From sequence record MG655269.1: DNA of 64,000 nt; one strand, written 5' to 3'. The position numbers and the translations under genes were made by a program. The notes under the pieces are model-generated. The model worked only from the letters and a program-made list of their open reading frames with translations. It was not told the DNA's origin and did not search any database. Position 1 is the first letter of the stretch, and the number at the start of each line of letters is the position of its first letter. Positions 5,418 through 63,994 of the stretch are shown in pieces.

Positions 5418-5446
5418 AGGAGAGCTTCGGCTCTCCTTTATGCCGG
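5418..5446 (+). terminator. Hairpin (C-UUCG-G loop) + TTATGCCGG element
   Basis: AGGAGAGC-TTCG-GCTCTCCT then TTATGCCGG, 8 nt after the stop at 5409. Confidence 0.8.
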
Positions 5447-8966: not shown

Positions 8967-11342
8967 ATGAATTTAAATGTGGACTATACAATTTACGTGG
9001 ATAACACCAAGAAGCTTATCCGCACAATGGTCATTAATTCGGCTCAATCAGCTAATATAATTAACGGCCGTATGGATGGCTTGGGGTACGGTCGTGACAT
9101 CTACGACAAGAGTACCTGGAAGTACTACATGAACATGGCCGGGATCTACCATCCGTCCAATGACCCGATGCAGGTGAAGTCACTCGATAACGGTCAGCTC
9201 ATCGACTTTACCCGTGAGAACATGGAGATCCATGTCAGCACCAAACGCAGCTACCAGTACGGCACCGACTATTATAAAGCCCTGGTTGCCCAATACCCGT
9301 ATCAGATCGCGCTGATCAAGGGGATCTTAAACCCAATTGATCTCAGTGTCTCAACCACCGCCGATGACTGGCAGATCCTCTATTACGATAAGACGCTGGT
9401 AGAAGACGGTGAAGAGAACCTGATCCCCCGTTTCCAGGAGTGGGTCAACACCCTGATCACCCAGACCTATCTGCCGGACTATGTCTACATCACCGAAGAT
9501 CTGATGCACCACTTCTATCTTTCCTTAATTGGTGGTTTTGGCCCTGGTGTGATCCTGGGGATTCGCTTAGAGAACATCAAAACCAACCGGGCACACAGCT
9601 TCCATATCTGGTCGCACATTCTGTCGCATGCTGATATTGAGCAGTATCGTCCGTACCTGAACCGCAAACAGATCCTCTATCTGTATCGCAACATTGTGTG
9701 GCATACCCGCAACCCAGGTGCGCAATACTCCTTCCAGAAGATGATCGACGCCTTCTTAACGGAACGCCGCATCCCATTACAGTCATACAACGCTCAGCAC
9801 AACACCTCGAGCATCCTGACCAAGATTAAACCCGAGGTGGAGTTCAAGCGTGAACTGTTGAACATGCAAGATGCGATTGCCAATGTGAACTATGTGCGCA
9901 GTACCCGTGAGATCCTGGAAGATGAAGTGCCGCTGGCGAAGAACAACGCCGATGTGTACGAAGACCGAATCGGGGAAGTCATTCAGGATGTTGGGACTAA
10001 CCGCAACAGTAACCTGCCGACCAAAGTGTTGGAATCCAACATGCGGGATCTCTCTGACTCGCTGCCGTTCTCACACTCCCTGACATTACTGAACGAATGG
10101 GTGCGGTTGTCCTCTACCGGAATGTACACCGCAGTGATCACCACCACCAACCCCAACACCGGATTGACCATGACCATGACAGTAAAGGAAGCGTTCATCC
10201 TTTACCTGTACGGTGTCTGGCAAAGTCACGGGGTTAACTTGGAGACGATCCCGACCTTCCGTGCCAATATGGTAATGAAGATCCCTCGGCCACAGTTTGC
10301 GTTCTTAAAAGCACAATACGGCTCGCAGCACGTCACTGACGAGTTCATCAAGTACGCCCTGAATCTCTGTCCGGATATCCCGGCGATCATCTCAACAGAA
10401 ACCTTCTATGCGAAGACACTTGAGATTAATGCCGCGACCCAGTTGCACCGGGATCTGTACAGCTACCGTAACCACTATCATGCACGGGCAGAATTCGAAG
10501 CCCTGGCCTTTGGTTTCTACCAAGATCAGGATTGCGACATCAACTCCGGCATGACGTATAAGGAGTTCTTCAAACAGAAGGGGTGGAACTTCACTGACTT
10601 ACCGCCAGAAGAGTGGGTGGTGTTCGCCAACAAGGTCTCCTCCATTGCCACCGGGTTGGACACGGCTAACCAGCAGAAGCTCGCGGATATTCAGCAAGCC
10701 ATGTTGGGTCTGACCATGCAGCTGTCCAGTTACACCATTCAAGTGATCAGGAAGATCAATGAAGAAGCGGTGGTGATGCTCGACTGGCCAACCTTGCGTG
10801 GGGGCGACATGCACATGAAGGTCTATCAACAGTGGCACTTGGTAGATAACCCTGTGCGACCGATTGATACCCACATGCGTGAGAAGAAGACCTACAAGCT
10901 GATCCACGACTTCCCGAAAGGCCATAACTCGGTAGAGCGCAGCTGGCGCTTCTATATCGACACCGCACGGCAGTTAAGTAGTCAGGGAATCAACTCCCGT
11001 TACAACTATTTAAACGGCGCACGTATGCGGCTGTGGACGGCTGACGATGCGGCGGGTACCGAGAACGAGTTTGACCAGCAGATGACCGTGAAAGATCTGC
11101 AAGGTCTCTGGATTGACCCGTACGGCGATGCCCGTCCGCCGGCTGACTTCAGTGCAGAAGTGTTGAACGGATTGTGGACTGATCCGTTACCCGGGATTGC
11201 ACCAATCGTTAGTAGCTTGGGTGGGTTGTGGATCGATGGTCCAAAGAGCAGTGGTTTTGATGAGGATCTCAACGGACTGCATGCCGAAGTCCCTGCGGCA
11301 TTACAAGCCTTACGCAATACCCCGGGTGATAGCGCCACGTAA
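8967..11342 (+). CDS. Virion structural protein, probable baseplate component (phiKZ gp128-like)
   Basis: Start refined to MNLNVDY (GGGAG RBS). WKYYMNMAGIYHPS and HSFHIWSHI motifs; divergent from the portal gene as in phiKZ-like genomes. Confidence 0.7.
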   Translation: MNLNVDYTIYVDNTKKLIRTMVINSAQSANIINGRMDGLGYGRDIYDKSTWKYYMNMAGIYHPSNDPMQVKSLDNGQLIDFTRENMEIHVSTKRSYQYGTDYYKALVAQYPYQIALIKGILNPIDLSVSTTADDWQILYYDKTLVEDGEENLIPRFQEWVNTLITQTYLPDYVYITEDLMHHFYLSLIGGFGPGVILGIRLENIKTNRAHSFHIWSHILSHADIEQYRPYLNRKQILYLYRNIVWHTRNPGAQYSFQKMIDAFLTERRIPLQSYNAQHNTSSILTKIKPEVEFKRELLNMQDAIANVNYVRSTREILEDEVPLAKNNADVYEDRIGEVIQDVGTNRNSNLPTKVLESNMRDLSDSLPFSHSLTLLNEWVRLSSTGMYTAVITTTNPNTGLTMTMTVKEAFILYLYGVWQSHGVNLETIPTFRANMVMKIPRPQFAFLKAQYGSQHVTDEFIKYALNLCPDIPAIISTETFYAKTLEINAATQLHRDLYSYRNHYHARAEFEALAFGFYQDQDCDINSGMTYKEFFKQKGWNFTDLPPEEWVVFANKVSSIATGLDTANQQKLADIQQAMLGLTMQLSSYTIQVIRKINEEAVVMLDWPTLRGGDMHMKVYQQWHLVDNPVRPIDTHMREKKTYKLIHDFPKGHNSVERSWRFYIDTARQLSSQGINSRYNYLNGARMRLWTADDAAGTENEFDQQMTVKDLQGLWIDPYGDARPPADFSAEVLNGLWTDPLPGIAPIVSSLGGLWIDGPKSSGFDEDLNGLHAEVPAALQALRNTPGDSAT

Positions 11343-14042: not shown

Positions 14043-14912
14043 ATGAACATTCTGGGTAAAGATCCACAACAGTTGATCAAAGAACTCGCTGCCGGTCACA
14101 ACAATGTCACGTTGGTGCCAGGGGCGACGAAAGTGGTCAACTTTCAAAACCTGGCTGGTACGGTTGGTATTGACGCACAGGCGGATATTGTCCCGGCTGA
14201 CCCGACCGTCTATTACCGTAAGAAGACCATCCAGTTTGGCAAGATCGATCTGTCCAAACATTGGCTGAATCAGCGTCTGACGATCCCACTGCAGGCAAAC
14301 TCAACCAGCCACAGCATCTTACCACAGCTGATCAAACGTTATGGTCTGAAACTGTCCACGGATGATCTGGTGTTGACCACGGTAAATACCAGTAAAGATA
14401 TCTGGGAATTGCCGATTCGGGTGAAAGCCACCTCGTGGGTCTTTAAGAACACGCTGGACAACATCATCGTCTACGCCACCGATGTCAGCACTGATCTGCA
14501 GTATGTGATCAAACGCCCATCGTTGACTGGGCTGGCGTATCCTTCTGCCGATACCACCAAGATGCAAGGCCCGCTGTTAAGCTACGGCATGCATTACAGT
14601 GTGTATACCGGACAGAACGAAGCGCTTAGAAATGCGAAGGTCGGTTACAAGATGATTGTGGCCTCTGACGATGACTGGGCGATTGCGGATCTGCTGTCGG
14701 ACTATACGGGCCTGGCGTGGTCGTTTAAACAGACTGGGCCAAGCCTGTACAATGCCGAAGTGGTTTACAATGGTGTTGCAACGAATGTACCGAGCACCTA
14801 TTCCCATCTTGATCGCAATAGCGCCACGAACTTCTTAATTTTGAAGCTCAGTGGTGTTGGTGATGTGGGCGGGTATGTGGCTATTGGTTACACGATCGAA
14901 GTTGATCCGTAG
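14043..14912 (+). CDS. Baseplate/tail structural protein, paralogue family 1
   Basis: FGKIDL (YNRLD equivalent); SLYNAEVVYNG...GYVAIGY C-terminus. Confidence 0.7.
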   Translation: MNILGKDPQQLIKELAAGHNNVTLVPGATKVVNFQNLAGTVGIDAQADIVPADPTVYYRKKTIQFGKIDLSKHWLNQRLTIPLQANSTSHSILPQLIKRYGLKLSTDDLVLTTVNTSKDIWELPIRVKATSWVFKNTLDNIIVYATDVSTDLQYVIKRPSLTGLAYPSADTTKMQGPLLSYGMHYSVYTGQNEALRNAKVGYKMIVASDDDWAIADLLSDYTGLAWSFKQTGPSLYNAEVVYNGVATNVPSTYSHLDRNSATNFLILKLSGVGDVGGYVAIGYTIEVDP

Positions 14913-14925
14913 CAGTGTATAAATA

Positions 14926-14951
14926 AAGGGTGGGGCTTCGGCTCTGCCCTT
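14926..14951 (+). promoter_or_regulatory. UUCG-capped hairpin directly upstream of the resolvase RBS
   Basis: AAGGGTGGGGC-TTCG-GCTCTGCCCTT, 11 bp with three G-U pairs; no U-tract; followed immediately by AGGGAG. Confidence 0.5.
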
Positions 14952-14961
14952 AGGGAGTCTT

Positions 14962-15567
14962 ATGATGGTGTTGCAAGATGGACGCCCGGTGGAAGAGTTA
15001 CTGCAGGTCTCCATTGACCCCGGAACCGATACCGTCGGTGTTACGTTATTGGGATTGCATCCGATCACCCTTGAGATGACCTGGAAGGAATCCTTTACGT
15101 TGTATGGATCATTGCTTAATTACCGCTCAGAGCTCGTGTTCCAGGAAGACCGGAATCGCGATGCACGTTTAAAGGGCCTCACTGATGCCCTGCTGCGTTA
15201 TCTCTGTACGGTGCGGCCTCACGTAGTGGTGTTTGAAGATAACTTCTTACGTCACTCCCCACAGGCCTTTAAAGCACTGATCGAATCGGTGGAAGCCATT
15301 AAGCGCGCAGTCTGGGGATATAACCCATACTTACCGTTCTATGAGATCTCTCCGATGCAGGCGAAAGGTGCCGTGAATGCGATTGCTCCTCGCGGACAAA
15401 AACATGATAAGGAGCTAGTGCGTAAGGGACTGATGAACTATCCACGTTTACAAATCCCTCATGCTGTTTTGCAGACACTCTCTGAGCACGCAGTTGACTC
15501 CGTCGCCATCGGCATCTACGGCCTGGAACAATTGTCGCTCGCATTGAGTGCTGCTCATTGGAGATAA
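14962..15567 (+). CDS. ruvC: RuvC-like Holliday junction resolvase
   Basis: SIDPGT (Asp1), VVVFED (Glu), HAVDSVAIG (C-terminal Asp): RNase H-fold RuvC signature; 201 aa. Confidence 0.85.
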   Translation: MMVLQDGRPVEELLQVSIDPGTDTVGVTLLGLHPITLEMTWKESFTLYGSLLNYRSELVFQEDRNRDARLKGLTDALLRYLCTVRPHVVVFEDNFLRHSPQAFKALIESVEAIKRAVWGYNPYLPFYEISPMQAKGAVNAIAPRGQKHDKELVRKGLMNYPRLQIPHAVLQTLSEHAVDSVAIGIYGLEQLSLALSAAHWR

Positions 15568-32744: not shown

Positions 32745-32754
32745 CCTACATTAC
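32745..32754 (+). promoter_or_regulatory. Candidate early promoter core CCTACATTAC
   Basis: Identical 10-mer at 40045 and variant at 58583, all after AT-rich tracts upstream of accessory gene blocks; resembles the phiKZ early TATTAC core. Confidence 0.45.
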
Positions 32755-37779: not shown

Positions 37780-38334
37780 GTGTCTATCTATCGCATTGAA
37801 ATCCACCCGAACGCCACCAGTGGTCTTACGGTACTTGTCAGCACGGCTGAAGGTATACGGCGGCTGGCATTAGTGGAAGGGTGTTCGGAACAGGGAGCGT
37901 TTGTAGTTATACGGGATAAGGTTATACGGTTCTATCATTGGGATGTACGACGGGAAGAAGACCGGGCGTTGTTCAATGCAGACGGTTTGGCACGGAACAC
38001 ACTGGTTGGGATCGAAGCCTTGTTGTGTAAGAACAAAGATTGGGGGTTTGGTGGGACGCGCTTCCTGGCGTTTATGACAGGGTGCTTAAAACACCGCTGG
38101 AACGAGTACAGCAACACGCGGGGGTTTATCCGAGCAGAACATCATCATTTGGTGCACACTCGCGTAGATCGCCGTGAGGAGCGTGTATTCGTGACATTAG
38201 GGGACTGGGCGCAACACGCACCGTGGAACTTGCGCCTGGACCGTAAAACCCCCTATTCAACGAAATTCAGAGAGGTGGTTGAACGCCTCGTCCGTCAGGA
38301 GTTCGACTTACCGGCGGTCTTTGACATTAATTAA
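37780..38334 (+). CDS. Hypothetical protein
   Basis: 184 aa, GTG start with GAGGAG RBS. Confidence 0.75.
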   Translation: MSIYRIEIHPNATSGLTVLVSTAEGIRRLALVEGCSEQGAFVVIRDKVIRFYHWDVRREEDRALFNADGLARNTLVGIEALLCKNKDWGFGGTRFLAFMTGCLKHRWNEYSNTRGFIRAEHHHLVHTRVDRREERVFVTLGDWAQHAPWNLRLDRKTPYSTKFREVVERLVRQEFDLPAVFDIN

Positions 38335-55499: not shown

Positions 55500-56205
55500 C
55501 CGTATCTTTGCCAATTATGATGGTTACATTGAAGCTATTGATGCGCATTTTAAACCTACCTATCAACTGCAGCTGGCTGAGCAAGTCATCCCGGGTGAGC
55601 AGATGGATAAGCTTGTAACCTGGATGGACCACAACGCCCATGTCAAGGGTGCAACCGTCTACCTGATGGAGTTGGTGCCTGATCTCGATAAACCGCATCC
55701 TGCACAATCAGAGATGCGTGTGTTTATTGCACTCGGTATGTTTAATCGTGAAGTCAACCCTGATTTGCCTTACTGGTGTCATGTACATCGCCATTACCCG
55801 GTTAACCTCGCTGTCGACTTGATTGTTACTGACCTGCAAGGCGTTCCTGTAACCCATGCCGTTCTGACTGCGTTTAAGTCATTTGATCGAGCACGCACCT
55901 ACAGGGATAATCTCGGCGGCAAAGGTGGGCATCAACCGCATCACGAAATCCATACTGGCATTATTGACCAAAGTGGTAAGGTGATCTTCGAAGCCTACGG
56001 GAATATCAACTGGCATACCAAGAATGCCATTCGCCTGCTGGCTGAACGACAGATTTTGCAGGAAGATACCGAGTTGTCAGCGGTGTGGTTACTGGCGGGT
56101 TTAAAAGCAGGTGTTAACTGGAAAGTCGAAGACCATGTTGACATCATGAAAGCAATCGATACTTTCCGTCCGAGGAATACCCATGATTTTAACGGCTATG
56201 TTTAA
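55483..56205 (+). CDS. Hypothetical protein
   Basis: 240 aa, GGAG RBS. Confidence 0.75.
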   Translation: MQNLNDRIFANYDGYIEAIDAHFKPTYQLQLAEQVIPGEQMDKLVTWMDHNAHVKGATVYLMELVPDLDKPHPAQSEMRVFIALGMFNREVNPDLPYWCHVHRHYPVNLAVDLIVTDLQGVPVTHAVLTAFKSFDRARTYRDNLGGKGGHQPHHEIHTGIIDQSGKVIFEAYGNINWHTKNAIRLLAERQILQEDTELSAVWLLAGLKAGVNWKVEDHVDIMKAIDTFRPRNTHDFNGYV

Positions 56206-56947
56206 GAAGTGCTTTGGTGCGTCGTCTGTCTATAAAGAAGATGACGGCAGTACACGCATTACCGCTGACCAGTATGAACTTACGCTGGGTCGATCCTACC
56301 ATCCTAAGCTCAAGCGTAAGGTGGGTCGGGGATTTGGCTTCTATGTCGAAAATGGCGAGAAGCTCGAGTTCGTCTTGCGGGGTTACTGGTTTGTGTTGAT
56401 CGCCTGGAGCAAGAAGCGCAAATCACTCAATTGGGACGAAGCGGAAAATGCACCGACCTACGGCTTCAATGTTGTCGACTCTGACTTAGCGATCTATCTC
56501 GGCAACGAATCCGCTAAGTCAGACAAACACATCAGCATGCGTAGTCGCAGCAAATACATCCCCCTGCCCTGGGCCTGGGTCTTCCATAAGCGTGAAGTGT
56601 TAACCACCCGTGACACCTGGGCTGATGTCAAAGAAGGTGCGCTGTCTCAGGGGTGGTCGTTCCCCGCCACATACGTCACCAAGCACAATGAAGTGCAAGA
56701 GATGATGATCGAAGCAACGATGGAGCGCATGACCTGGCGCCTGGCATGGCTCCCTTGGTTCGCACCGGTTACCAAGAAAGACCGCTCGGCAAGTTACAAA
56801 TACCACGGGAACGGTGGTAACGGGGTTGGTCACGATGCCAGTGGGTGGAAAGGCGGGGTCATCGGTGGTGGGGTCATCATGCGGGATAATGAGCACAACC
56901 CGAAAGAAACATTCGACCGTTTAATTAAAGAGCAGCATTACGGCTAA
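56183..56947 (+). CDS. Hypothetical phage protein (SGWKGG motif)
   Basis: 254 aa; the start could also be 56198. Confidence 0.7.
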   Translation: MILTAMFKKCFGASSVYKEDDGSTRITADQYELTLGRSYHPKLKRKVGRGFGFYVENGEKLEFVLRGYWFVLIAWSKKRKSLNWDEAENAPTYGFNVVDSDLAIYLGNESAKSDKHISMRSRSKYIPLPWAWVFHKREVLTTRDTWADVKEGALSQGWSFPATYVTKHNEVQEMMIEATMERMTWRLAWLPWFAPVTKKDRSASYKYHGNGGNGVGHDASGWKGGVIGGGVIMRDNEHNPKETFDRLIKEQHYG

Positions 56948-56959
56948 GAAGGAAAGCAC

Positions 56960-58111
56960 ATGCGTCAGTATTTGGATGGGATTCGTTACATCTTTGAGAA
57001 CGGGTCACAACGAGGGGATCGCACCGGGGTAGGTACGTTGTCGGTGTTCTCGATGAAGCAGACTTACGATCTGCGTCTGGGATTCCCACTGGTCACCAGT
57101 AAGAAAGTGCGTATCGATTTTATTATCGAAGAGCTCATCTCCTTCCTGTCGGGTAACCCTGATATGCCGGGGGTGGGTATCTGGGATGATTGGCGTGTCA
57201 AAGACGAAGTCTCTCGTGAAGTCCCGTTAGAGAACCACGAGCGTTTAAAACTCTGGGTTGAGAAGTCGGACCTGAAGTATAACGTTGCTTACCTTCAACT
57301 CAATGCGATGGGTTCTGTCGAAGAGGGCCATCGTTTCCTGGATGAGCAAGGGATTCCACGTAACAGAAAAGAAGTACTGGTAGCAGAAGGTGCACTCAAT
57401 GCACCCTATGGACCAGCGTGGCGTGCGTGGAAAGGTCGTCTGGGCGAAGTGCATGATCAGATCGGTTATCTGCTCAAGTTGCTTAAAAACAATCCTACGA
57501 GTCGTCGTATGCTATTGTCTGCCTGGGACCCAGCGAACATGCCGGATGAGTCTATCAGTCCGCAGGATAACATCATTGATGGCAAACCATGTCTGACTCC
57601 GTGTCACTGGGCGTTTGAGCTGTACACTGACGAAATCCTGGCAGAGGAACGCCTTGATTGGGTCGAAGCTAATGCACCTAGCCTCTGGGAAGACTACAAT
57701 GATCGTTCAGGACGTGGTCAGTGGTTAGGCGACACAGACAGTAAGCGCCTTCATGAATTCCTGGACGAAGCCGGCGTACCGAAGTATTACCTGGATCTGA
57801 AGTATCACCAACGTTCCTGTGACTATATGGTTGGCGTGCCGTATAACATCGCCAGCTATGCGGTGTTGCAGCACATGTTCGCCGCCACCTGTAACATGAT
57901 CCCGCGGATACTGGAAGCGGATATGACTAACATCCATATCTACAACTTCCACAAAACCAATGCGGTCATGCAGGCCAGTCGCAGCCCACGCGCACTACCC
58001 ACTCTGAAGGTACTCGCCGCTCACGATAAGTTGGAAGACTATACGTTGGAAGACTTTGAACTCGAAGGTTATGATCCGCATCCTTTTATTAAATATGAAA
58101 GAGCGGTCTGA
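56960..58111 (+). CDS. thyA: Thymidylate synthase with two insertions
   Basis: DRTGVGT, SRRMLLSAWDP, LTPCH (catalytic Cys), QRSCD...GVPYNIASY, HIY. Confidence 0.95.
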   Translation: MRQYLDGIRYIFENGSQRGDRTGVGTLSVFSMKQTYDLRLGFPLVTSKKVRIDFIIEELISFLSGNPDMPGVGIWDDWRVKDEVSREVPLENHERLKLWVEKSDLKYNVAYLQLNAMGSVEEGHRFLDEQGIPRNRKEVLVAEGALNAPYGPAWRAWKGRLGEVHDQIGYLLKLLKNNPTSRRMLLSAWDPANMPDESISPQDNIIDGKPCLTPCHWAFELYTDEILAEERLDWVEANAPSLWEDYNDRSGRGQWLGDTDSKRLHEFLDEAGVPKYYLDLKYHQRSCDYMVGVPYNIASYAVLQHMFAATCNMIPRILEADMTNIHIYNFHKTNAVMQASRSPRALPTLKVLAAHDKLEDYTLEDFELEGYDPHPFIKYERAV

Positions 58112-58143
58112 TCCACTGGTGCGTTGAAGGGAGCACAACGGTA

Positions 58144-58509
58144 ATGAAGAGAGAGTCCAGTTACACCCTGGTCTTTGGGGAAGGTAGTACTGAAGAAGAT
58201 GTCAACACCCTGCGTGAGATGGTGTCACACATGCGGGGGTTGACTGGGTTGTCGCAGCTGGGGGCGTTTGAGGTGTTCGTTACCCATTATGAATTGCAAC
58301 GTAAAGACGCAGGGCTAATCACCAGTAATCTTCCGGTGAATGCACAGTCGTTGTTTGATGTCAGTGATCGACAGAACTGGCTGACACCGCTGTTCACTTC
58401 CCGGGGGTTAGTGGCGTGTGATTTGTTGTTGTTACTGAAGCAAGGCAAATGGACCGGAGAACACCTCAAGGTGACCTTTCGGGTAAAAGGCATCAGGGCG
58501 AAAGCATAA
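58144..58509 (+). CDS. Hypothetical protein
   Basis: 121 aa, GGGAG RBS. Confidence 0.7.
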   Translation: MKRESSYTLVFGEGSTEEDVNTLREMVSHMRGLTGLSQLGAFEVFVTHYELQRKDAGLITSNLPVNAQSLFDVSDRQNWLTPLFTSRGLVACDLLLLLKQGKWTGEHLKVTFRVKGIRAKA

Positions 58510-58515
58510 CGCATA

Positions 58516-58543
58516 CGGAGGGGTCATTCCCTCCGCTATGCCG
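58516..58543 (+). terminator. Hairpin + TATGCCG element (GCATA on the left flank)
   Basis: CGGAGGG-GTCATT-CCCTCCG then CTATGCCG. Confidence 0.75.
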
Positions 58544-58582
58544 ATTAAGTTTTTAACAAAGTTTACTGCAGATCTTTTCAGA

Positions 58583-58592
58583 CCTATATCAC
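58583..58592 (+). promoter_or_regulatory. Candidate early promoter core CCTATATCAC
   Basis: Variant of CCTACATTAC with the same TCAGA 5' flank as the 40045 copy. Confidence 0.4.
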
Positions 58593-58641
58593 GTCGGTGA
58601 ATAACCTTTCACTAATTAACCAATCCGTAAGGAGTTTTATC

Positions 58642-60018
58642 ATGGCTGCATTAAAATCTAAAGTTGAACTGTTTCACTGGTATCAGGAACTGAAAACTGA
58701 ATTTAAAACCGGCAAGATTACCGTGTTCGAATTTGAGCGGCAGGTGCTCAGCGAAATCCTTTCCCTGACCGATACTGGTAAAACACCATCTACTGCCAAA
58801 ATCAGTCTGGTAGTGGACATCCTTAATTCTGTGGTTTTTGATCATGTGTTTACCGCAGACGGTATCATTGACCTGGACAACATGCTCGCTCGTGAACCCG
58901 TACGCAACATTTCGGAATTGACGGCGGCACGCAATAACTTTATTACCATACAAGCCCAGGCCCGTCTGAACAAAGAAAAGGAACAGACTGCGAAACCAGC
59001 AGAGCAGAAGGCATTTGCCAAGTTTCCAACGAAAGAAGAGCTCGAATATTGGGTTAATGCCAGAAAGCTATTCCGTTATGGTAACCCCAATACGCTCGGC
59101 ACTGAAGCATACCAGGAGGTTGTCAAATACTGGCATCTGGTCGATAAATATCTGGGTACATTAAAACTGGAACTGGATCACACCGACCCTAACTACGTCG
59201 ATAACATCCTGTTGATTGACTACTTTGTATCGTTGGTCGCCAAGCAAGAGGTTCCTGAGGAAGAACGCAGGCATCTGAAAGACACACTTAGCAGTCTATA
59301 TGCGTGCTCCATTAAAACCCCACACATCGATGCATTTGTCGAACGTGGCCAACACCCCCTTCCAGTTAAGCCAAAACAACCACCCATCGCGCAACAAGCC
59401 ATCGACCGCGCTATTGCCTGGCGTGAAGAGGAAACCAAAACAAACCATCAGCAAAAAGACATATTACGAGAATTCGCCGATCAATACTGTCCGGTAATGG
59501 TGGCCAAGCAACATGCCACTCAGCAGTTGTTTGATTTCGTTGCTCGTGCGGTGAAACGTGTCTTGACCGCCATTGCTCAGCCAAACAACCCGGAAGACGC
59601 CGAGATGCTGGCAAAAGGTCATGCCATCAACATTCTCAATGTTAAGCATGGTGTAATTGGTGTCAGTACCACGATTACCAGAAACGGTCTGGTCAAGTTA
59701 CGCATCTTCGCTGAACGTGAACTATGTAACGAGGACTACGGTATTCCGACTCTGTCGTATAATCAAGTCCGTCAATCACCTCATGCAACGTTCAGCATAC
59801 CAATGCCGGCGCTGATAGATGGGTTCATTAACATGTGGGATATCCCTAATCAGGCCCCTCGCCATATGCATAATAGCGTAGGCGGTATGTTGGGTAATCC
59901 CTATCCGTTACAGCAGCTTGATGGTTTGATGTCAGCTATTGCAAGAGAAGCAGCCGAGTACGGCGTTACGCCTACTTATGGCATGATCGAAGACAGCCTT
60001 ATCGTTGTGCTGCATTAA
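58642..60018 (+). CDS. Hypothetical protein; N-terminal helical module shared with 60082
   Basis: Start refined (AAGGAG RBS); WYQELKTEFKTGKI and YFVSLVAKQEV...IDAFVER blocks. Confidence 0.8.
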   Translation: MAALKSKVELFHWYQELKTEFKTGKITVFEFERQVLSEILSLTDTGKTPSTAKISLVVDILNSVVFDHVFTADGIIDLDNMLAREPVRNISELTAARNNFITIQAQARLNKEKEQTAKPAEQKAFAKFPTKEELEYWVNARKLFRYGNPNTLGTEAYQEVVKYWHLVDKYLGTLKLELDHTDPNYVDNILLIDYFVSLVAKQEVPEEERRHLKDTLSSLYACSIKTPHIDAFVERGQHPLPVKPKQPPIAQQAIDRAIAWREEETKTNHQQKDILREFADQYCPVMVAKQHATQQLFDFVARAVKRVLTAIAQPNNPEDAEMLAKGHAINILNVKHGVIGVSTTITRNGLVKLRIFAERELCNEDYGIPTLSYNQVRQSPHATFSIPMPALIDGFINMWDIPNQAPRHMHNSVGGMLGNPYPLQQLDGLMSAIAREAAEYGVTPTYGMIEDSLIVVLH

Positions 60019-60025
60019 TTCACAC

Positions 60026-60055
60026 GGGGAGGTTTCCCTCCCCCTTTTATTTTTT
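60026..60055 (+). terminator. Canonical intrinsic terminator
   Basis: GGGGAGG-TTTC-CCTCCCC then CTTTTATTTTTT. Confidence 0.8.
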
Positions 60056-60081
60056 AATTAACCTACTGTGAGAATTTAACC

Positions 60082-60783
60082 ATGAACAAAGAAACTTATA
60101 CTACCTGGTACAATGGATTAAAAGAAAGATTGGCGACTGGGCACATTAATCAGGAACACTACGAGACACTTATTGTTGACAATCTAAGTTCATTGATTAC
60201 TCATTTCTTCAATAGTCGATACGACGATGGTCATATGTCTCTGGAGGAGCATTTTGCGTTAGTTAATCATTATTTCGAACTGGTTGCTGATGCAGAAATA
60301 TCAGAACGCAGTGCCATGCTCATGGTACGTTCTGTAGCTAGCAGTATTCAAAAGCTACCAGCGGCTAAAGCCTTCGCAGAGAAACATAACACTCCGGCGC
60401 CGTCAATTAAAGAAATTCTTGGTAGTCGACCTGGTTTACTGCGTAAGCATGCTGCCAGCACGACCGAGAAGATGATAGGGTGTCCGGTGATCACCCAGGT
60501 CAACGAACCTGAGAACGAAGTAACCATTGAACTACCCTGGAAAACCGCATTGCACGTTTACAAAGGGTTCCTGGTAAAGGCGTTGATGTCAAAGCATGGA
60601 TACAAATACAGTGACGCGTATAACTACATTACTGATCATCAGAACAAATACGACGAACTCTTGGCAGAAGTCCTCAACAGCATTATTGCTAATGAGGAAT
60701 CGCATCTGGTGTCGGTAGGTGGCGGCATCACTGCAGCGGGTACTGGTCTGGCGGTAAGCGGGATTATTAAGCCGGAGGAGTGA
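60082..60783 (+). CDS. Fusion protein: helical module + non-catalytic RNA polymerase beta-prime fragment
   Basis: 60412-60693 encodes ..RPGLLRKH...PVIT...ELPW...K..L...L..K...A..Y...Y...LA......IIA, ungapped against the remembered phiKZ gp55 beta-prime segment KPGLARRH...AVIT...HIPW...ELIAE. No RNPTL or NADFDGD. Confidence 0.65.
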   Translation: MNKETYTTWYNGLKERLATGHINQEHYETLIVDNLSSLITHFFNSRYDDGHMSLEEHFALVNHYFELVADAEISERSAMLMVRSVASSIQKLPAAKAFAEKHNTPAPSIKEILGSRPGLLRKHAASTTEKMIGCPVITQVNEPENEVTIELPWKTALHVYKGFLVKALMSKHGYKYSDAYNYITDHQNKYDELLAEVLNSIIANEESHLVSVGGGITAAGTGLAVSGIIKPEE

Positions 60784-61343
60784 TGAAAGGAGAGATAGAG
60801 ACACGCTTCAGAAGACACTACGGCAACCACATTAAACGGGGTAGTGATATCGCAGTGCCTTTATACCACATTAGTCTACAGAATGACTTGGAGGGGCTAT
60901 GGCGACCTAAAGCCCCTGACTCGCCATTTGATATTCCGAAGAAACCCAGCATCATTACTGAAATGCCGCTCCCGCGTATCTGTGTAGCACCATCTATCGA
61001 ACAGTGCTTCTGGGCAATCTATCCCAATATCTCTAAGCTCTTTGAAGAGGAAGAATACGCAGCGGTTTGTTTTGCGGTTTATCAACCGATCTTGCATGCC
61101 GGTATTGCTGTCGTGGATACCAGTACGTTAACGCAATGCCGACTGGTGCACGATGCACATATTACCGGCGAGCATTGGTTACTTAGTGATACCACCATGT
61201 GTGTGATCGACTTTATTCAGGTTAATAACACCTCACACGGCGAGTTCGTAAAGTTCCATCCGTTTAATACCCCGGTTGGTAACGAATGGGAGCTCGCCCC
61301 TAAAAATGTTGTTTATCATTCACTTAAATTAACGGAGTTGTAA
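60780..61343 (+). CDS. Possible ADP-ribosyltransferase-fold protein
   Basis: LYHIS...PRICVAPSI..C...AI...DAHITGEHW pattern (His strand, late Glu); GGAGG RBS. Confidence 0.4.
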   Translation: MMKGEIETRFRRHYGNHIKRGSDIAVPLYHISLQNDLEGLWRPKAPDSPFDIPKKPSIITEMPLPRICVAPSIEQCFWAIYPNISKLFEEEEYAAVCFAVYQPILHAGIAVVDTSTLTQCRLVHDAHITGEHWLLSDTTMCVIDFIQVNNTSHGEFVKFHPFNTPVGNEWELAPKNVVYHSLKLTEL

Positions 61344-61347
61344 ATCC

Positions 61348-61992
61348 ATGGTAACTGCTAGAAAAGCTAATAAGACCTTAGGTGAGCACGCAGTAGCTCA
61401 TGAGGCAGTAACACGCTTAGGTAGCAACAAGAAAGTCAAACCAGTTAAACCGCTTTGGACACTGGAGAACATCGAGGACAATCTGGTTGGTCAAGGCATC
61501 CTTGCCTACTTGAAACGCCACACGTCGTTATCGATCCGTGATATCAACACCGCGGCTAACCGCCTGACGAAGATTGCTGATTCAGATATAAAGGAAGGGA
61601 AAGCGCGTGATTACGTGGCACGAGTTATTGGGTACAACAATTACGACGCTCTCAACGTCACCGTTCGTGCAGCGGTACCTGTGCGCAATCATGTACAACG
61701 TCGTAAAGCAAATCAGCCGGTCACAGAGTTGTTGATAGAAGACGAAGAACTGCCGCCGGTAACACATACTGAAATCAACCCCTTGGTGATGTTAGCCCTA
61801 CAGCGTGAGATCTCTAAACGCGGCTTTCGTCTCCTTGGTAAGAACTACCGGGCTTTCGTTAACAAGGATAACCCCGAGCACACCTTTACGTTGATGCAGG
61901 CGTACAACTACCTTGCCAAACAACTGGGTTATCCAGACTATCACTCTATGCCCCGTCAATACCCAATCATTAACTTGCGCTACGTCGATTAA
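61348..61992 (+). CDS. Hypothetical protein with a duplicated helical motif
   Basis: ARDYVARVIGYNNYDAL and AYNYLAKQLGYPDYHSM. Confidence 0.75.
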   Translation: MVTARKANKTLGEHAVAHEAVTRLGSNKKVKPVKPLWTLENIEDNLVGQGILAYLKRHTSLSIRDINTAANRLTKIADSDIKEGKARDYVARVIGYNNYDALNVTVRAAVPVRNHVQRRKANQPVTELLIEDEELPPVTHTEINPLVMLALQREISKRGFRLLGKNYRAFVNKDNPEHTFTLMQAYNYLAKQLGYPDYHSMPRQYPIINLRYVD

Positions 61993-62014
61993 CCTATTGT
62001 GAGGAATAAAGAAC

Positions 62015-62764
62015 ATGACGACGACTTTCCCGAAAGAGATGAATGCCGCTTTCCATCCTGATAACGAGCAAACCACTCAGCTGTGCAAAACGATCCAGCA
62101 GATCAGCGGGGTAGAAATCAAACGTGTACATGTGGTGATGGCGATCCACCATTACAAACAAAACGATGCGGCACATCAGCCTGACCACATGCTGGCGGTC
62201 TTAGCAGAAGCAGCCCACATCATCCAGTCGTTTCCTGACCTGGAGAAATGGCGCACCCAGATCATGTTAGGGTGTCTGTTCCATGACACCCACTGTCACA
62301 TCGATCGGGATATGCACCACCTGCTAGGTGCCGAACATGCCCAAGAGGCATTACTGGAGTATGCGTGTGGTTATGGGATGTCACGTGCGGATGTCTACCT
62401 GATCAGTCAGGCCGTACTGGAGCATCGGGCTTCCTGGAAGTACCCGCGTATTAACCCTGTATCCAACGCTGTGGCGTCTGCAGATCGTGGCTACCCTGAT
62501 CTAAAGAAATACATCCGTCGTGCTGTACAGTACCGTTACAAGCGCATGGCAGTCATCAACATGAACACCATCATCGATGAGTCGATCGAACACATGGTAG
62601 AGAAGTTCGGTGATGGCGGTTATGCCTGGGAAAGCTACCCGACGTATGCAGCGGTGATGCACGGTGATGCGATCCAACAAGTGAAGCAACAACTGCGCAG
62701 TAAAGAAGGAAAGGCGCAGCTCAAAGAGTACGCTGAACTCCACTTTGATGAGTGGGTAGAATAA
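62015..62764 (+). CDS. HD-domain metal-dependent phosphohydrolase
   Basis: HQPDH...LFHDT...HHLLGA...EHR...ADR spacing of the HD superfamily. Confidence 0.8.
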   Translation: MTTTFPKEMNAAFHPDNEQTTQLCKTIQQISGVEIKRVHVVMAIHHYKQNDAAHQPDHMLAVLAEAAHIIQSFPDLEKWRTQIMLGCLFHDTHCHIDRDMHHLLGAEHAQEALLEYACGYGMSRADVYLISQAVLEHRASWKYPRINPVSNAVASADRGYPDLKKYIRRAVQYRYKRMAVINMNTIIDESIEHMVEKFGDGGYAWESYPTYAAVMHGDAIQQVKQQLRSKEGKAQLKEYAELHFDEWVE

Positions 62765-62772
62765 GCTACGTG

Positions 62773-62801
62773 GCCGGAGGTAATCCTCCGGCTGTTATGC
62801 C
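62773..62801 (+). terminator. Hairpin + TTATGCC element
   Basis: GCCGGAGG-TAAT-CCTCCGGC then TGTTATGCC. Confidence 0.75.
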
Positions 62802-62924
62802 TGTTCTTTCTTCTTTGTAATTCTCAACACATTCGGTCTTTGTTATACAAAGGCTATAATCTTTGTCCCGAGCTAAGGGTAACGTGAACAGTTATGCTGG
62901 CTTACTTTTTAAAGGTATCTTTTC

Positions 62925-63455
62925 ATGGATGGTTTATTTAATCTCTCCTCATGGCAATCGCTTTTACTTGTGGTAGTTGTACTCCTGCTGTGGGCGTATT
63001 ACCAACGACTTCAACACCTGCGTCGTAAGTATCATCGCCGTAATGAACGCATGATGGCGCAGAGCGTGGTCATGACATCCCGGCTGTTACTGAGTACCTT
63101 CTCGGAGATTGTGGAACGCGCTAAAGAGGAGGACATCTACCAGCGTGATCCTAACTCCCCGATTGCGGCAGACCGGGCCAGTGCGATGGCCTGCTCCTCC
63201 ATCTTCAGTGGGTTGTATAACCTGGTTGTGGTGCCCGTCACCACCCTTGATCCGGTGTTCAACGATTTATTGATTACCGGTACTGAGCGGGAAGATGTTG
63301 AGGAAGGGGTCTTTGTGTCGTTTTATTTGGGTGAACAGCGTAATGATGTGGTTAGGCATTTTATACCCGACCGGTCGTTACAGGCCTTTATCACCCAAAC
63401 GCGTGCCTTCAGTGCTTACCTGCGACAGGCTGCGAATACAAAACCACCACAATGA
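62925..63455 (+). CDS. Membrane-anchored hypothetical protein
   Basis: N-terminal TM (LLLVVVVLLLWAYY), then a basic helix. Confidence 0.75.
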   Translation: MDGLFNLSSWQSLLLVVVVLLLWAYYQRLQHLRRKYHRRNERMMAQSVVMTSRLLLSTFSEIVERAKEEDIYQRDPNSPIAADRASAMACSSIFSGLYNLVVVPVTTLDPVFNDLLITGTEREDVEEGVFVSFYLGEQRNDVVRHFIPDRSLQAFITQTRAFSAYLRQAANTKPPQ

Positions 63456-63463
63456 GGTGACAC

Positions 63464-63994
63464 ATGACCAATTATGGTTTTCTGCTGAACACAGTACTTC
63501 TGGCTTTTCTTATTTGGTTTGGTTACCGACTGCACACGTTGGTAAACAACAGCGAGAAAGCCACCCTCGCCGCTGATCATAACGCCAAGCTGCGCTTCCT
63601 GACCTATGCAGCCCGGCAGATAATGAGTGACTTGTATACGTCGCTCAATCTTCCGACGCTCACCGGGTGTGCGAAGATGTATCTACGCGATGACGGCAAG
63701 CTTGATAATATTGAAGTCATTATGCGACTCTTCATGAAAACCCATAATGAGATTATTACCAAGCTCTCCGAGGGATTGGTGTCGGATCATTTGAAGATCA
63801 CCGATGTTAAAGTTACCCATGATCTGGTGACCAACGAAGTGCTCATCACACTCTTGTATCCGAATAAAGTCACTGACATCCTGGTCTTCCATCATAACCA
63901 CCTGGCGCAGGCGATCTACCAACTGGATCGATTGCAGCATCGGCTCTCAACGTTCCACAAAGCGGTGCCGAACCGCGACCTGTACCAACTCTAA
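63464..63994 (+). CDS. Membrane-anchored hypothetical protein
   Basis: N-terminal TM (FLLNTVLLAFLIWFGY); same length (176 aa) as the upstream gene; GAGGTG RBS. Confidence 0.75.
   Translation: MTNYGFLLNTVLLAFLIWFGYRLHTLVNNSEKATLAADHNAKLRFLTYAARQIMSDLYTSLNLPTLTGCAKMYLRDDGKLDNIEVIMRLFMKTHNEIITKLSEGLVSDHLKITDVKVTHDLVTNEVLITLLYPNKVTDILVFHHNHLAQAIYQLDRLQHRLSTFHKAVPNRDLYQL

Follow-up and report, generated by a model that had tools for sequence, protein, structure and literature searches.

What does a jumbo phage that already encodes intact catalytic RNA polymerase (RNAP) subunits do with a further piece of one of them, kept in a gene of its own and lacking the active site? The question is raised by gp72 (MADMEL_72), an open reading frame (ORF) of 233 amino acids (aa) at 60082..60783 on the + strand of a 64,000-nucleotide stretch of sequence record MG655269.1 (the whole of which is the window referred to below). 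The record is that of Erwinia phage vB_EamM_MadMel, an Agricanvirus (Ea35-70/RAY group) and nucleus-forming jumbo phage; the window equals bases 1-64000 of it, and a 4.3-kb portion used as a check was 100% identical. Phages of this kind depend throughout infection on two RNA polymerases of their own, both split and both lacking alpha. The gene is annotated as 'hypothetical protein' and matches its own family, PHROG 11276 (phrog_11276), at 233/233 positions (E = 3.5e-159). A sequence-only reading of the window had proposed that 94 of its codons are a captured, catalytically dead beta' fragment fused into an accessory gene. Our comparisons indicate that gp72 is almost certainly a non-catalytic fragment derived from the N-terminal beta' subunit (beta'N) of the non-virion RNAP (nvRNAP), although they do not show the foreign origin implied by the word 'captured'.

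The 94 codons, at 60412..60693 (+), translate exactly to the peptide quoted in that reading, aa 111-204 of the ORF, and the gapless match to phiKZ gp55 came back as the same alignment: in a phmmer (HMMER) search of all PDB sequences, phiKZ gp55 (7ogp_A) was the sole significant match, pairing gp72 111-204 with residues 292-385 without gaps (E = 5e-6), and residues 292-385 are also the homologous part of MadMel gp225. With a profile of 11 gp72 orthologues the E-value was 5.7e-10 for phiKZ gp55 and 7e-5 for AR9 beta', and profile-profile comparison (hhalign) with 20 nvRNAP beta'N sequences gave a probability of 98.8% and E = 7.2e-17, aligning gp72 111-217 with gp225 292-391. PHROG 2987 ('RNA polymerase beta subunit') matches gp72 at E = 1.8e-17, and only through profile positions 226-368 of 478. 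When the gp72-family profile was run against 1.84 billion representative proteins, it returned 231 matches at E <= 1e-3, nearly all of them beta'N subunits of 400-550 aa aligned over the same columns. Pfam PF00623 (RNA_pol_Rpb1_2), which most true beta'N orthologues carry, gave no match to gp72 even at E <= 1. In structure comparison by Foldseek, the best PDB matches for the gp72 core were phiKZ gp55 8que_A (probability 1.0) and 7ogr_A (71 columns, root-mean-square deviation 1.9 A), followed by AR9 beta' and plastid beta'; the E-values were only 0.02-0.1, and we treat the modelled fold as supportive, not independent, evidence of beta' likeness.

In phiKZ gp55 the clamp comprises residues 1-291 and the DFDGD motif, at 417-421, lies between strands 5 and 6 of the double-psi beta-barrel (PMC8287921, PMC7618050). 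The homology of gp72 begins exactly where this clamp ends, and the protein stops before DFDGD 417-421. The profiles also assign the fragment to the non-virion and not the virion type, since the gp72-family profile matches the non-virion subunit gp225 (2e-7) and not the virion beta'N subunit gp165 (PHROG 2986; family HMM, a hidden Markov model, E = 0.63; hhalign E = 0.22). This assignment fits the helical insert that gp72 has kept, an insert specific to each polymerase type according to Iyer et al. (PMC7824862).

Four parts can be distinguished along the protein. The N-terminal helical domain (aa 1-105; 60082..60396, +) is a locus-specific module with no detectable beta' origin; it is all helical in AlphaFold2 (AF2) models, with predicted local distance difference test (pLDDT) values of 92-97, and aa 1-108 showed no similarity to beta'N by hhalign (E = 0.3). 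The PHROG and AR9 alignments do reach back to aa 54, an extension that profile-profile comparison does not back, and for want of any beta'N signal in that comparison the idea that the domain is a diverged clamp was rejected. A weak similarity to YciE/ferritin-like proteins (profile E = 5e-4), which Pfam does not support, remains a lead only. Next comes a variable linker with the degenerate equivalent of switch 2 (aa 106-135; 60397..60486, +), described from the alignment of orthologues, dN/dS (the ratio of nonsynonymous to synonymous substitution rates) and pLDDT. Its mean identity is 43%, its pLDDT is below 50 in both AF2 models, the only conserved residues are G118, R121, (K122) and M131, and relatives differ by indels of up to ~20 aa; its net charge is +3, vs +5.2 in true beta'N.

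The conserved beta'-derived core (aa 136-204; 60487..60693, +) opens with PVITQV and VTIELPW, which are strands 1 and 2 of the double-psi beta-barrel, and continues with the nvRNAP-specific helical insert, modelled as four helices (pLDDT 84-95). Residues invariant across orthologues include P135, V136 and I137, L151, P152 and W153, and A156-Y160. The C-terminal tail ESHLVSVGGGITAAGTGLAVSGIIKPEE (aa 205-233; 60694..60780, +) occupies the place that ...RNPTL... and barrel strands 3-4 have in beta'N, and ends just short of the strand-5/NADFDGD position. The AF2 models contain three strands only (138-140, 147-152 and 223-229), the last of which pairs with the 138-152 hairpin, and the Gly loop 210-220 is of low confidence; the sequence for strands 5-6 is absent. 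The earlier description of the match as the switch-2 region holds for position, through a chained alignment in which gp225 'FAGKLGLLRKNIAGAKHPWTGRCVITS' / 'GKLGLLRKNIAGAKHPWTGRCVITS' aligns to bacterial beta' and gp72 111 equals gp225 292, but this is the least conserved stretch of the protein and has lost most of its basic residues. What is conserved in gp72 is the barrel and insert part together with the new Gly-rich tail, not switch 2.

The catalytic elements are missing, as had been noted from the letters: neither RNPTL nor D-x-DGD occurs in gp72, and no NPTL or D-x-DGD was found in any frame of 58000-63500. R396, N397 and P398 are invariant in 20 beta'N family members, and gp72 has VGGGITAAG there instead. 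A Zn-ribbon clamp is likewise lacking, as aa 1-108 of gp72 contain no Cys cluster and the invariant C72, C74, C87 and C90 (gp225 numbering) are absent. Over the aligned fragment columns, the mean net charge is -1.4 in the gp72 family vs +4 in real beta'N, implying that the basic, nucleic-acid-facing character is gone. One orthologue, P0007 (L014 5001-5813), carries 37 extra aa ahead of its final residue, with the sequence AIPDFDGAAVSDEEMLAILNKVNKTG ('...PDFDGAAVSDEEM...'), which its sister lacks. MAFFT places the DFDG of this insertion on the NADFDGD loop of real beta'N; the insertion may be a remnant of that catalytic loop or a chance resemblance.

The working subunits are found elsewhere. 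MadMel has seven annotated RNAP subunits. One of them, gp225 (495 aa), contains NPTL at 397 as well as DFDGD at 435 and is the true orthologue of gp55, which it matches at E = 1.6e-67 over residues 16-492; the virion beta'N subunit gp165 has DYDGD at 483. gp225 follows gp224, as gp223 of RAY follows the shell gene gp222 (Table S3 of PMC10299810 pairs gp222 with gp223); the core-gene block 1 place beside the nuclear shell gene is thus held by gp225, and gp72 lies 125 kb away in an accessory region. Because intact gp225 and intact gp165 are both encoded elsewhere in MadMel, these comparisons identify gp72 as a surplus, non-catalytic paralogue of the non-virion type. The opposite case would be that gp72 really is part of a catalytic subunit whose gene is split, or that it serves as another catalytic beta'N in a second nvRNAP form. 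Jumbo-phage RNAP genes are frequently split, and a different form of the nvRNAP that would act at middle promoters has been suggested (PMC7598289). We consider the chance of this practically negligible, given complete beta'N genes elsewhere, no DxDGD or NPTL in any frame within 58-63.5 kb, and neighbours gp71, gp73 and gp74 without beta' similarity. On the same grounds (both beta'N genes complete, no catalytic motif nearby in any frame), rescue by a frameshift was rejected. The candidacy of gp71, gp73 and gp74 as further RNAP pieces was rejected because they gave hhalign E-values of 0.15-0.87 and no credible PDB or family match; the sole stray match in these searches was 29 residues to a designed coiled coil (E = 0.003).

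The N-terminal module has a distribution of its own. It occurs in the upstream neighbour gp71 (58597..60018, +; hhalign E = 4e-5), with a second, weaker copy at ~aa 145-257, in AH06_76 (191 aa; BLASTP 1e-5), and as stand-alone ORFs of 105 and 107 aa beside the gp72 orthologues of the metagenomic relatives L009 and L008. Since the module thus recurs without the beta' piece, the reading of gp72 as a fusion into an accessory gene is supported by the sequence comparisons. The order gp71, optional small ORFs, gp72, gp73, gp74 and phosphohydrolase is syntenic in AH06 and four contigs of 225-288 kb, and the small N-module ORFs vary in presence and absence between relatives.

Is the fusion protein maintained, or is it on its way out? 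Eleven gp72 orthologues were found (233-270 aa, 54-100% identity), all with the ORF intact and all on contigs of jumbo-phage size, and their alignment has 67 invariant columns. In a Nei-Gojobori analysis of seven genomes, in which synonymous sites are saturated in most pairs, dN/dS was 0.05-0.12 in the beta' core, 0.03-0.12 in the Gly-rich tail, 0.15-0.21 in the N-domain and 0.26-0.63 in the linker/switch 2. The neutral degeneration that the sequence-only reading had named as fatal to its proposal was not seen, and from these ratios gp72 is a selected dead paralogue, under purifying selection despite the loss of its catalytic residues. A functionless, decaying remnant of a duplicated beta'N gene would be expected to have lost catalytic motifs and most basic switch-2 residues, as gp72 has, and would match its very long stem branch; an intact, length-conserved ORF in 11 lineages with saturated synonymous sites, the invariant columns, dN/dS of 0.05-0.15 and the conserved translational coupling to gp73 make such decay very improbable. 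The coupling is deduced from the sequence at 60774..60785 (+), where the gp73 ribosome-binding site GGAGGAG (gp72 codons P-E-E) is followed by a TGA/ATG overlap; this stop/start overlap is also present in Ea35-70, RAY, AH06, L008, L010 and L014.

The tail is the most conserved stretch of gp72, with 91% mean pairwise identity. This opens the way to a different account, according to which gp72 is a neofunctionalised scaffold whose half barrel and invariant loop VGGGITAAGTG bind a small phosphate-bearing ligand (a nucleotide or signalling molecule) or another protein, the beta' ancestry being merely historical. The tail substitutes for the NTP-contacting RNPTL loop at the same place, and at the level of a motif aa 176-217 weakly resemble the Gly-rich segment in a model for ASKHA/ROK kinases (E = 0.029), with a score far short of the cut-off of that model. 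That match is not significant, no fold or family match speaks for ligand binding, and part of the constancy of the tail lies at the nucleotide level, as its terminal P-E-E codons are also the gp73 ribosome-binding site, so that we judge this account quite unlikely.

A second regime is apparent in the 5' half of the gene. MadMel and Ea35-70 are 98-100% identical across 5.7 kb outside a sharply bounded patch at 60100..60519 (+; gp72 codons ~7-146, N-module and linker), within which sliding nucleotide identity falls to 55-82%. The gp72 proteins of the two phages are 74% identical while their beta'N subunits are 100% identical, and with the N-half at 55-82% this implies that the two halves of gp72 are under different regimes. 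The shift in codon style that had been noticed between the AT-rich 5' half and the fragment is real but modest, with a GC content at third codon positions (GC3) of 0.37 in codons 1-110 vs 0.53 in codons 111-204, and the AT-richer half coincides with the patch. The patch is a recombinational allele exchange, compatible with diversifying pressure on the N-half of gp72 or with neutral import.

The protein could be a host-directed counter-defence adaptor or decoy, in which the variable N-half binds a variable host factor (e.g. an immune sensor) and the beta'-like half mimics a sensed part of the polymerase or tethers the target to it. Such a role is suggested by the sharply bounded divergent patch in otherwise 98-100% identical genomes, the raised dN/dS of the linker, the amplification of the N-module in the locus with presence/absence variation, and the position of the gene in a variable accessory genome region (PMC10299810), 3 kb downstream of a homologue of Acb3, an inhibitor of CBASS (cyclic oligonucleotide-based anti-phage signalling system). 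We rate it as unlikely, since there is no known defence system that senses phage RNAP beta', the Acb3 link is one of proximity only and the patch may be a neutral recombination import.

The origin of the fragment was addressed with a tree of ~129 columns shared by the gp72 family and beta'N. The gp72 sequences form a single clade (support 99) whose stem measures 1.86 substitutions per site; its placement among beta'N is not reliable, as support there is weak. A tree that forced it to be sister to the Agricanvirus beta'N was not rejected and in fact scored better (approximately unbiased (AU) test, p = 0.60), from which capture from another source, as first proposed, is not shown; an old internal duplication with acceleration fits the sequences as well as capture from elsewhere. 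The family was found only in Agricanvirus-like phages, and tblastn with gp225 residues 292-414 gave exactly one copy per record in 270 phage records. In the library of 1.84 billion proteins, candidates for other truncated paralogues were rejected, the short matches being contig-edge fragments that still have RNPSL or NADFDGD.

The fragment is 21% identical to the beta'N of its own phage and 33% identical to that of Noxifer. That it is no closer to its own polymerase than to those of distant phages, together with the allelic mosaicism among co-circulating Agricanviruses, could point to a weapon used between phages: the fragment would act as a dominant negative, entering and poisoning the nvRNAP of a related jumbo phage in the same cell, to which the producer's own polymerase would be resistant. 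We find this distinctly improbable: the beta'N subunits of MadMel and Ea35-70 are identical, leaving no visible target or escape variation among natural competitors, and the entry of gp72 into a polymerase is a supposition.

Two further sequences touch on the distribution of gp72-like pieces. The Gly-rich tail was considered as a portable module, as protein P0072 shares the tail only, and this was rejected because the P0072 gene model is an artefact, placed on the remains of decayed phage DNA. These remains lie in L011 (GCA_054859325.1, contig JBTAPL010000082.1, 4.7 Mb), where a decayed, frameshifted Agricanvirus-like stretch at ~8985-10036 and 14789-15076 holds pieces of gp71, the gp72 C-terminus, the gp73 end, gp74 and gp75, with the P0072 model splicing phage pieces; the stretch is interrupted by a reverse-transcriptase/integrase element and has other reverse-transcriptase (RVT) genes on its flanks, and it may represent phage sequence inserted into a genome that is probably eukaryotic, or else a chimeric assembly. 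In the BFVD collection, the 84-aa viral protein I1VXK4 superposes on the gp72 beta' core over 71 columns (template modelling (TM) score 0.67 on the target, probability 1.0); its accession adjoins I1VXH8, a 478-aa phage beta'N, and I1VXK4 may likewise be a small protein made from a beta' fragment, or one part of a split gene, in a different phage.

What, then, would a selected fragment do? The sequence-only reading had offered, as hypotheses, control of the hand-over between the two polymerases, sequestration of an RNAP partner, poisoning of a competing phage's polymerase and a decoy for a defence sensor. The reading that we tentatively favour, as a possibility short of an even chance, is that gp72 is a selected, non-catalytic pseudo-subunit that acts by partner contact and modulates the nvRNAP. 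In gp72 a ~100-residue piece of nvRNAP beta'N is joined to a helical module amplified in the locus; the piece begins just past the clamp, takes in the degenerate switch 2 and the opening half of the double-psi beta-barrel and extends to the nvRNAP-specific helical insert, and a new, near-invariant Gly-rich tail stands in place of the RNPTL and NADFDGD active-site elements. Because a half barrel cannot catalyse and probably cannot fold fully alone, and because the positive charge is lost, protein-protein contact is the most likely mode of action. The acidic half barrel and insert, blind to nucleic acid, would offer the conserved surface of the beta' core to a partner that packs against it in the nvRNAP, which may be the beta-like barrel subunit, the beta' C-terminal subunit or the sigma-like fifth subunit, while the fast-evolving N-module and linker would bind something variable, setting a second specificity; the net effect would be to adjust how the nvRNAP assembles, how active it is or where it localises. 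In two AF2 runs confidence stays low for residues 114-136 and for the Gly loop, with both flanking domains confident, which is consistent with folding upon a partner. A partner or a dimer could complete the barrel.

A more detailed and more doubtful form of the pseudo-subunit proposal would have the half-barrel and insert dock on the beta-like or sigma-like nvRNAP partner, with the N-module setting specificity, and the protein titrate or re-target polymerase assembly, thereby timing the phage's own programme, disabling the polymerase of a co-infecting relative or blunting a host sensor. Several points weigh against modulation of the nvRNAP. RAY gp070, the gp72 orthologue of that phage, was outside the tagged set and was absent from the ~60 proteins seen by mass spectrometry of lysates. 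The restriction of the family to Agricanvirus-like phages means that any role in the universal nvRNAP cycle must be dispensable elsewhere. The alignment behind the second AF2 model included beta'N sequences, so that its beta'-like fold is not independent evidence. Finally, the most conserved element, the Gly-rich tail, has no RNAP counterpart, and the function may be unrelated to transcription.

The surrounding genes and signals were described from the sequence. Downstream, gp73 (60783..61343, +; 186 aa) is translationally coupled to gp72 and has no RNAP similarity; it has many invariant Cys, His and Glu residues (PRICVAPSIEQCFWAIYPN, DAHxTGEHW) and could be an enzyme yet to be characterised. 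Homologues of gp73 with ~40% identity on other phage-like contigs of 140-460 kb, L015 and L016 included, lack a gp72-like neighbour, and their surroundings offered no hint of function. Upstream, the annotated GTG start of gp71 at 58597 is probably too far upstream, as its homologues all align from residue 16 and Ea35-70 annotates the shorter form; the true start is probably the ATG at 58642, which is preceded by AATTAACC and AGGAG. Between gp71 and gp72, at 60026..60063 (+), lies a terminator-like hairpin, GGGGAGG-TTTC-CCTCCCC, with a T-run and the 8-mer AATTAACC, the latter 19 nt before the gp72 ATG; the hairpin is kept in five relatives with differing stem sequences. Genome-wide, AATTAACC has 19 copies on the + strand and 2 on the - strand, most of them between 10 and 30 nt ahead of a start codon, with gp71 and gp72 among the genes so preceded. 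The + copies include those at 38329, 47613, 58614 and 60056 of the window, with 15 more genome-wide, and by this placement the 8-mer is a candidate promoter or leader element.

Two other repeated signals stand out. The 9-mer CTA(C/T)ATTAC occurs 15 times on the + strand of the whole MadMel genome and 0 times on the - strand, mostly in intergenic positions with A/T-rich sequence before it; copies on the + strand of the window include those at 32746, 40046 and 60624, another lies upstream of gp224 (the shell gene by position), and the element looks like an early (virion-RNAP) promoter element. The copy inside gp72, at 60624-60632, may be due to chance, as ~2 are expected per strand. A GC-rich hairpin directly followed by CTTTATGCCG is found in the window at 5436, 27585, 40434 and 53572 and beyond it at 66083, 81986, 86564, 103923 and 216670, and TTTATGCCG has 17 copies on the + strand and 3 on the - strand. 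The hairpin-CTTTATGCCG units contain TATG, the core of phiKZ late promoters, and may be combined terminator-promoters. The annotated start of MADMEL_63 (53576) is the ATG within a CTTTATGCCG motif and is probably wrong. MADMEL_68 (56183-56947, +), annotated as hypothetical, is a full-length match to Pfam PF25187, CBASS inhibitor Acb3 (E = 3e-62), and this gene lies upstream of thymidylate synthase in all relatives examined. In AH06 (L007 775-2769) an HNH homing endonuclease gene splits thymidylate synthase into two ORFs, and the MadMel gene (56960-58111) is intact.

The existence of the paralogue was already in print, and the statement in the sequence-only reading that no description of such a fusion was known is not quite right. 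Prichard et al. 2023 (Cell Rep; PMC10299810, Fig. 2 legend and Table S3) give RAY 'gp070, gp223' (core gene cg5) as homologous to phiKZ gp055; RAY gp070 (gp70) is the gp72 orthologue, 97.9% identical, and AH06_78 carries the automatic annotation 'RNA polymerase subunit beta''. Their entry does no more than list RAY gp070; neither it nor the AH06_78 annotation says anything on truncation, dead site, fusion or selection, and gp070 was not localised in that work. Two reviews of jumbo-phage RNAPs (PMC7598289, PMC7824862) mention no such protein. What is new here is the analysis of truncation, dead site, fusion and selection. gp72 may bear on how the two polymerases assemble and how the early/middle/late hand-over is controlled; phiKZ nvRNAP does not use middle promoters in vitro (PMC7598289). 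As a conserved, non-catalytic copy of the core of a catalytic subunit, gp72 offers a ready-made probe of the contacts that hold the nvRNAP together. Should it regulate or poison the enzyme, it would represent a new type of viral transcription control, and its mosaic N-half would also mark a player in phage-host or phage-phage conflict; should it be unrelated to transcription, it still shows the reuse of half of the universal double-psi barrel as a building block.

Among known systems, the closest are phiKZ gp55 and MadMel gp225 (PHROG 2987, PF00623; PDB 7OGP, 8QUE), to which ~95-105 residues of gp72 are homologous. The shared part takes in the place of switch 2, the strands that open the barrel, with their (L/I)PW motif, and the helical insert specific to nvRNAPs. 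Compared with these subunits, gp72 is less than half as long and lacks the clamp with its Zn-ribbon as well as RNPTL and NADFDGD. It falls below the Pfam threshold, is not located beside chimallin, differs in its N-terminal domain, ends in a Gly-rich tail that is new, is less positive by ~5 charge units and changes several times as fast in evolution. It resembles pseudoenzymes and other dead-paralogue regulators in that catalysis is lost, the scaffold is under purifying selection and an active paralogue coexists, but it keeps a fragment of one domain only, a half barrel. In its proposed mode of action it is like T7 Gp2, T4 AsiA and Xp10 P7, small phage proteins that modulate a multisubunit RNAP by binding, although gp72 has no sequence or fold similarity to regulators of this type. 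None of these regulators is related to an RNAP subunit, and all act on the polymerase of the host, whereas gp72 is polymerase-derived and would act on the enzyme of its own or a rival phage, which, if true, would make it the representative of a class of transcription regulators derived from an RNAP fragment and not described for any virus.

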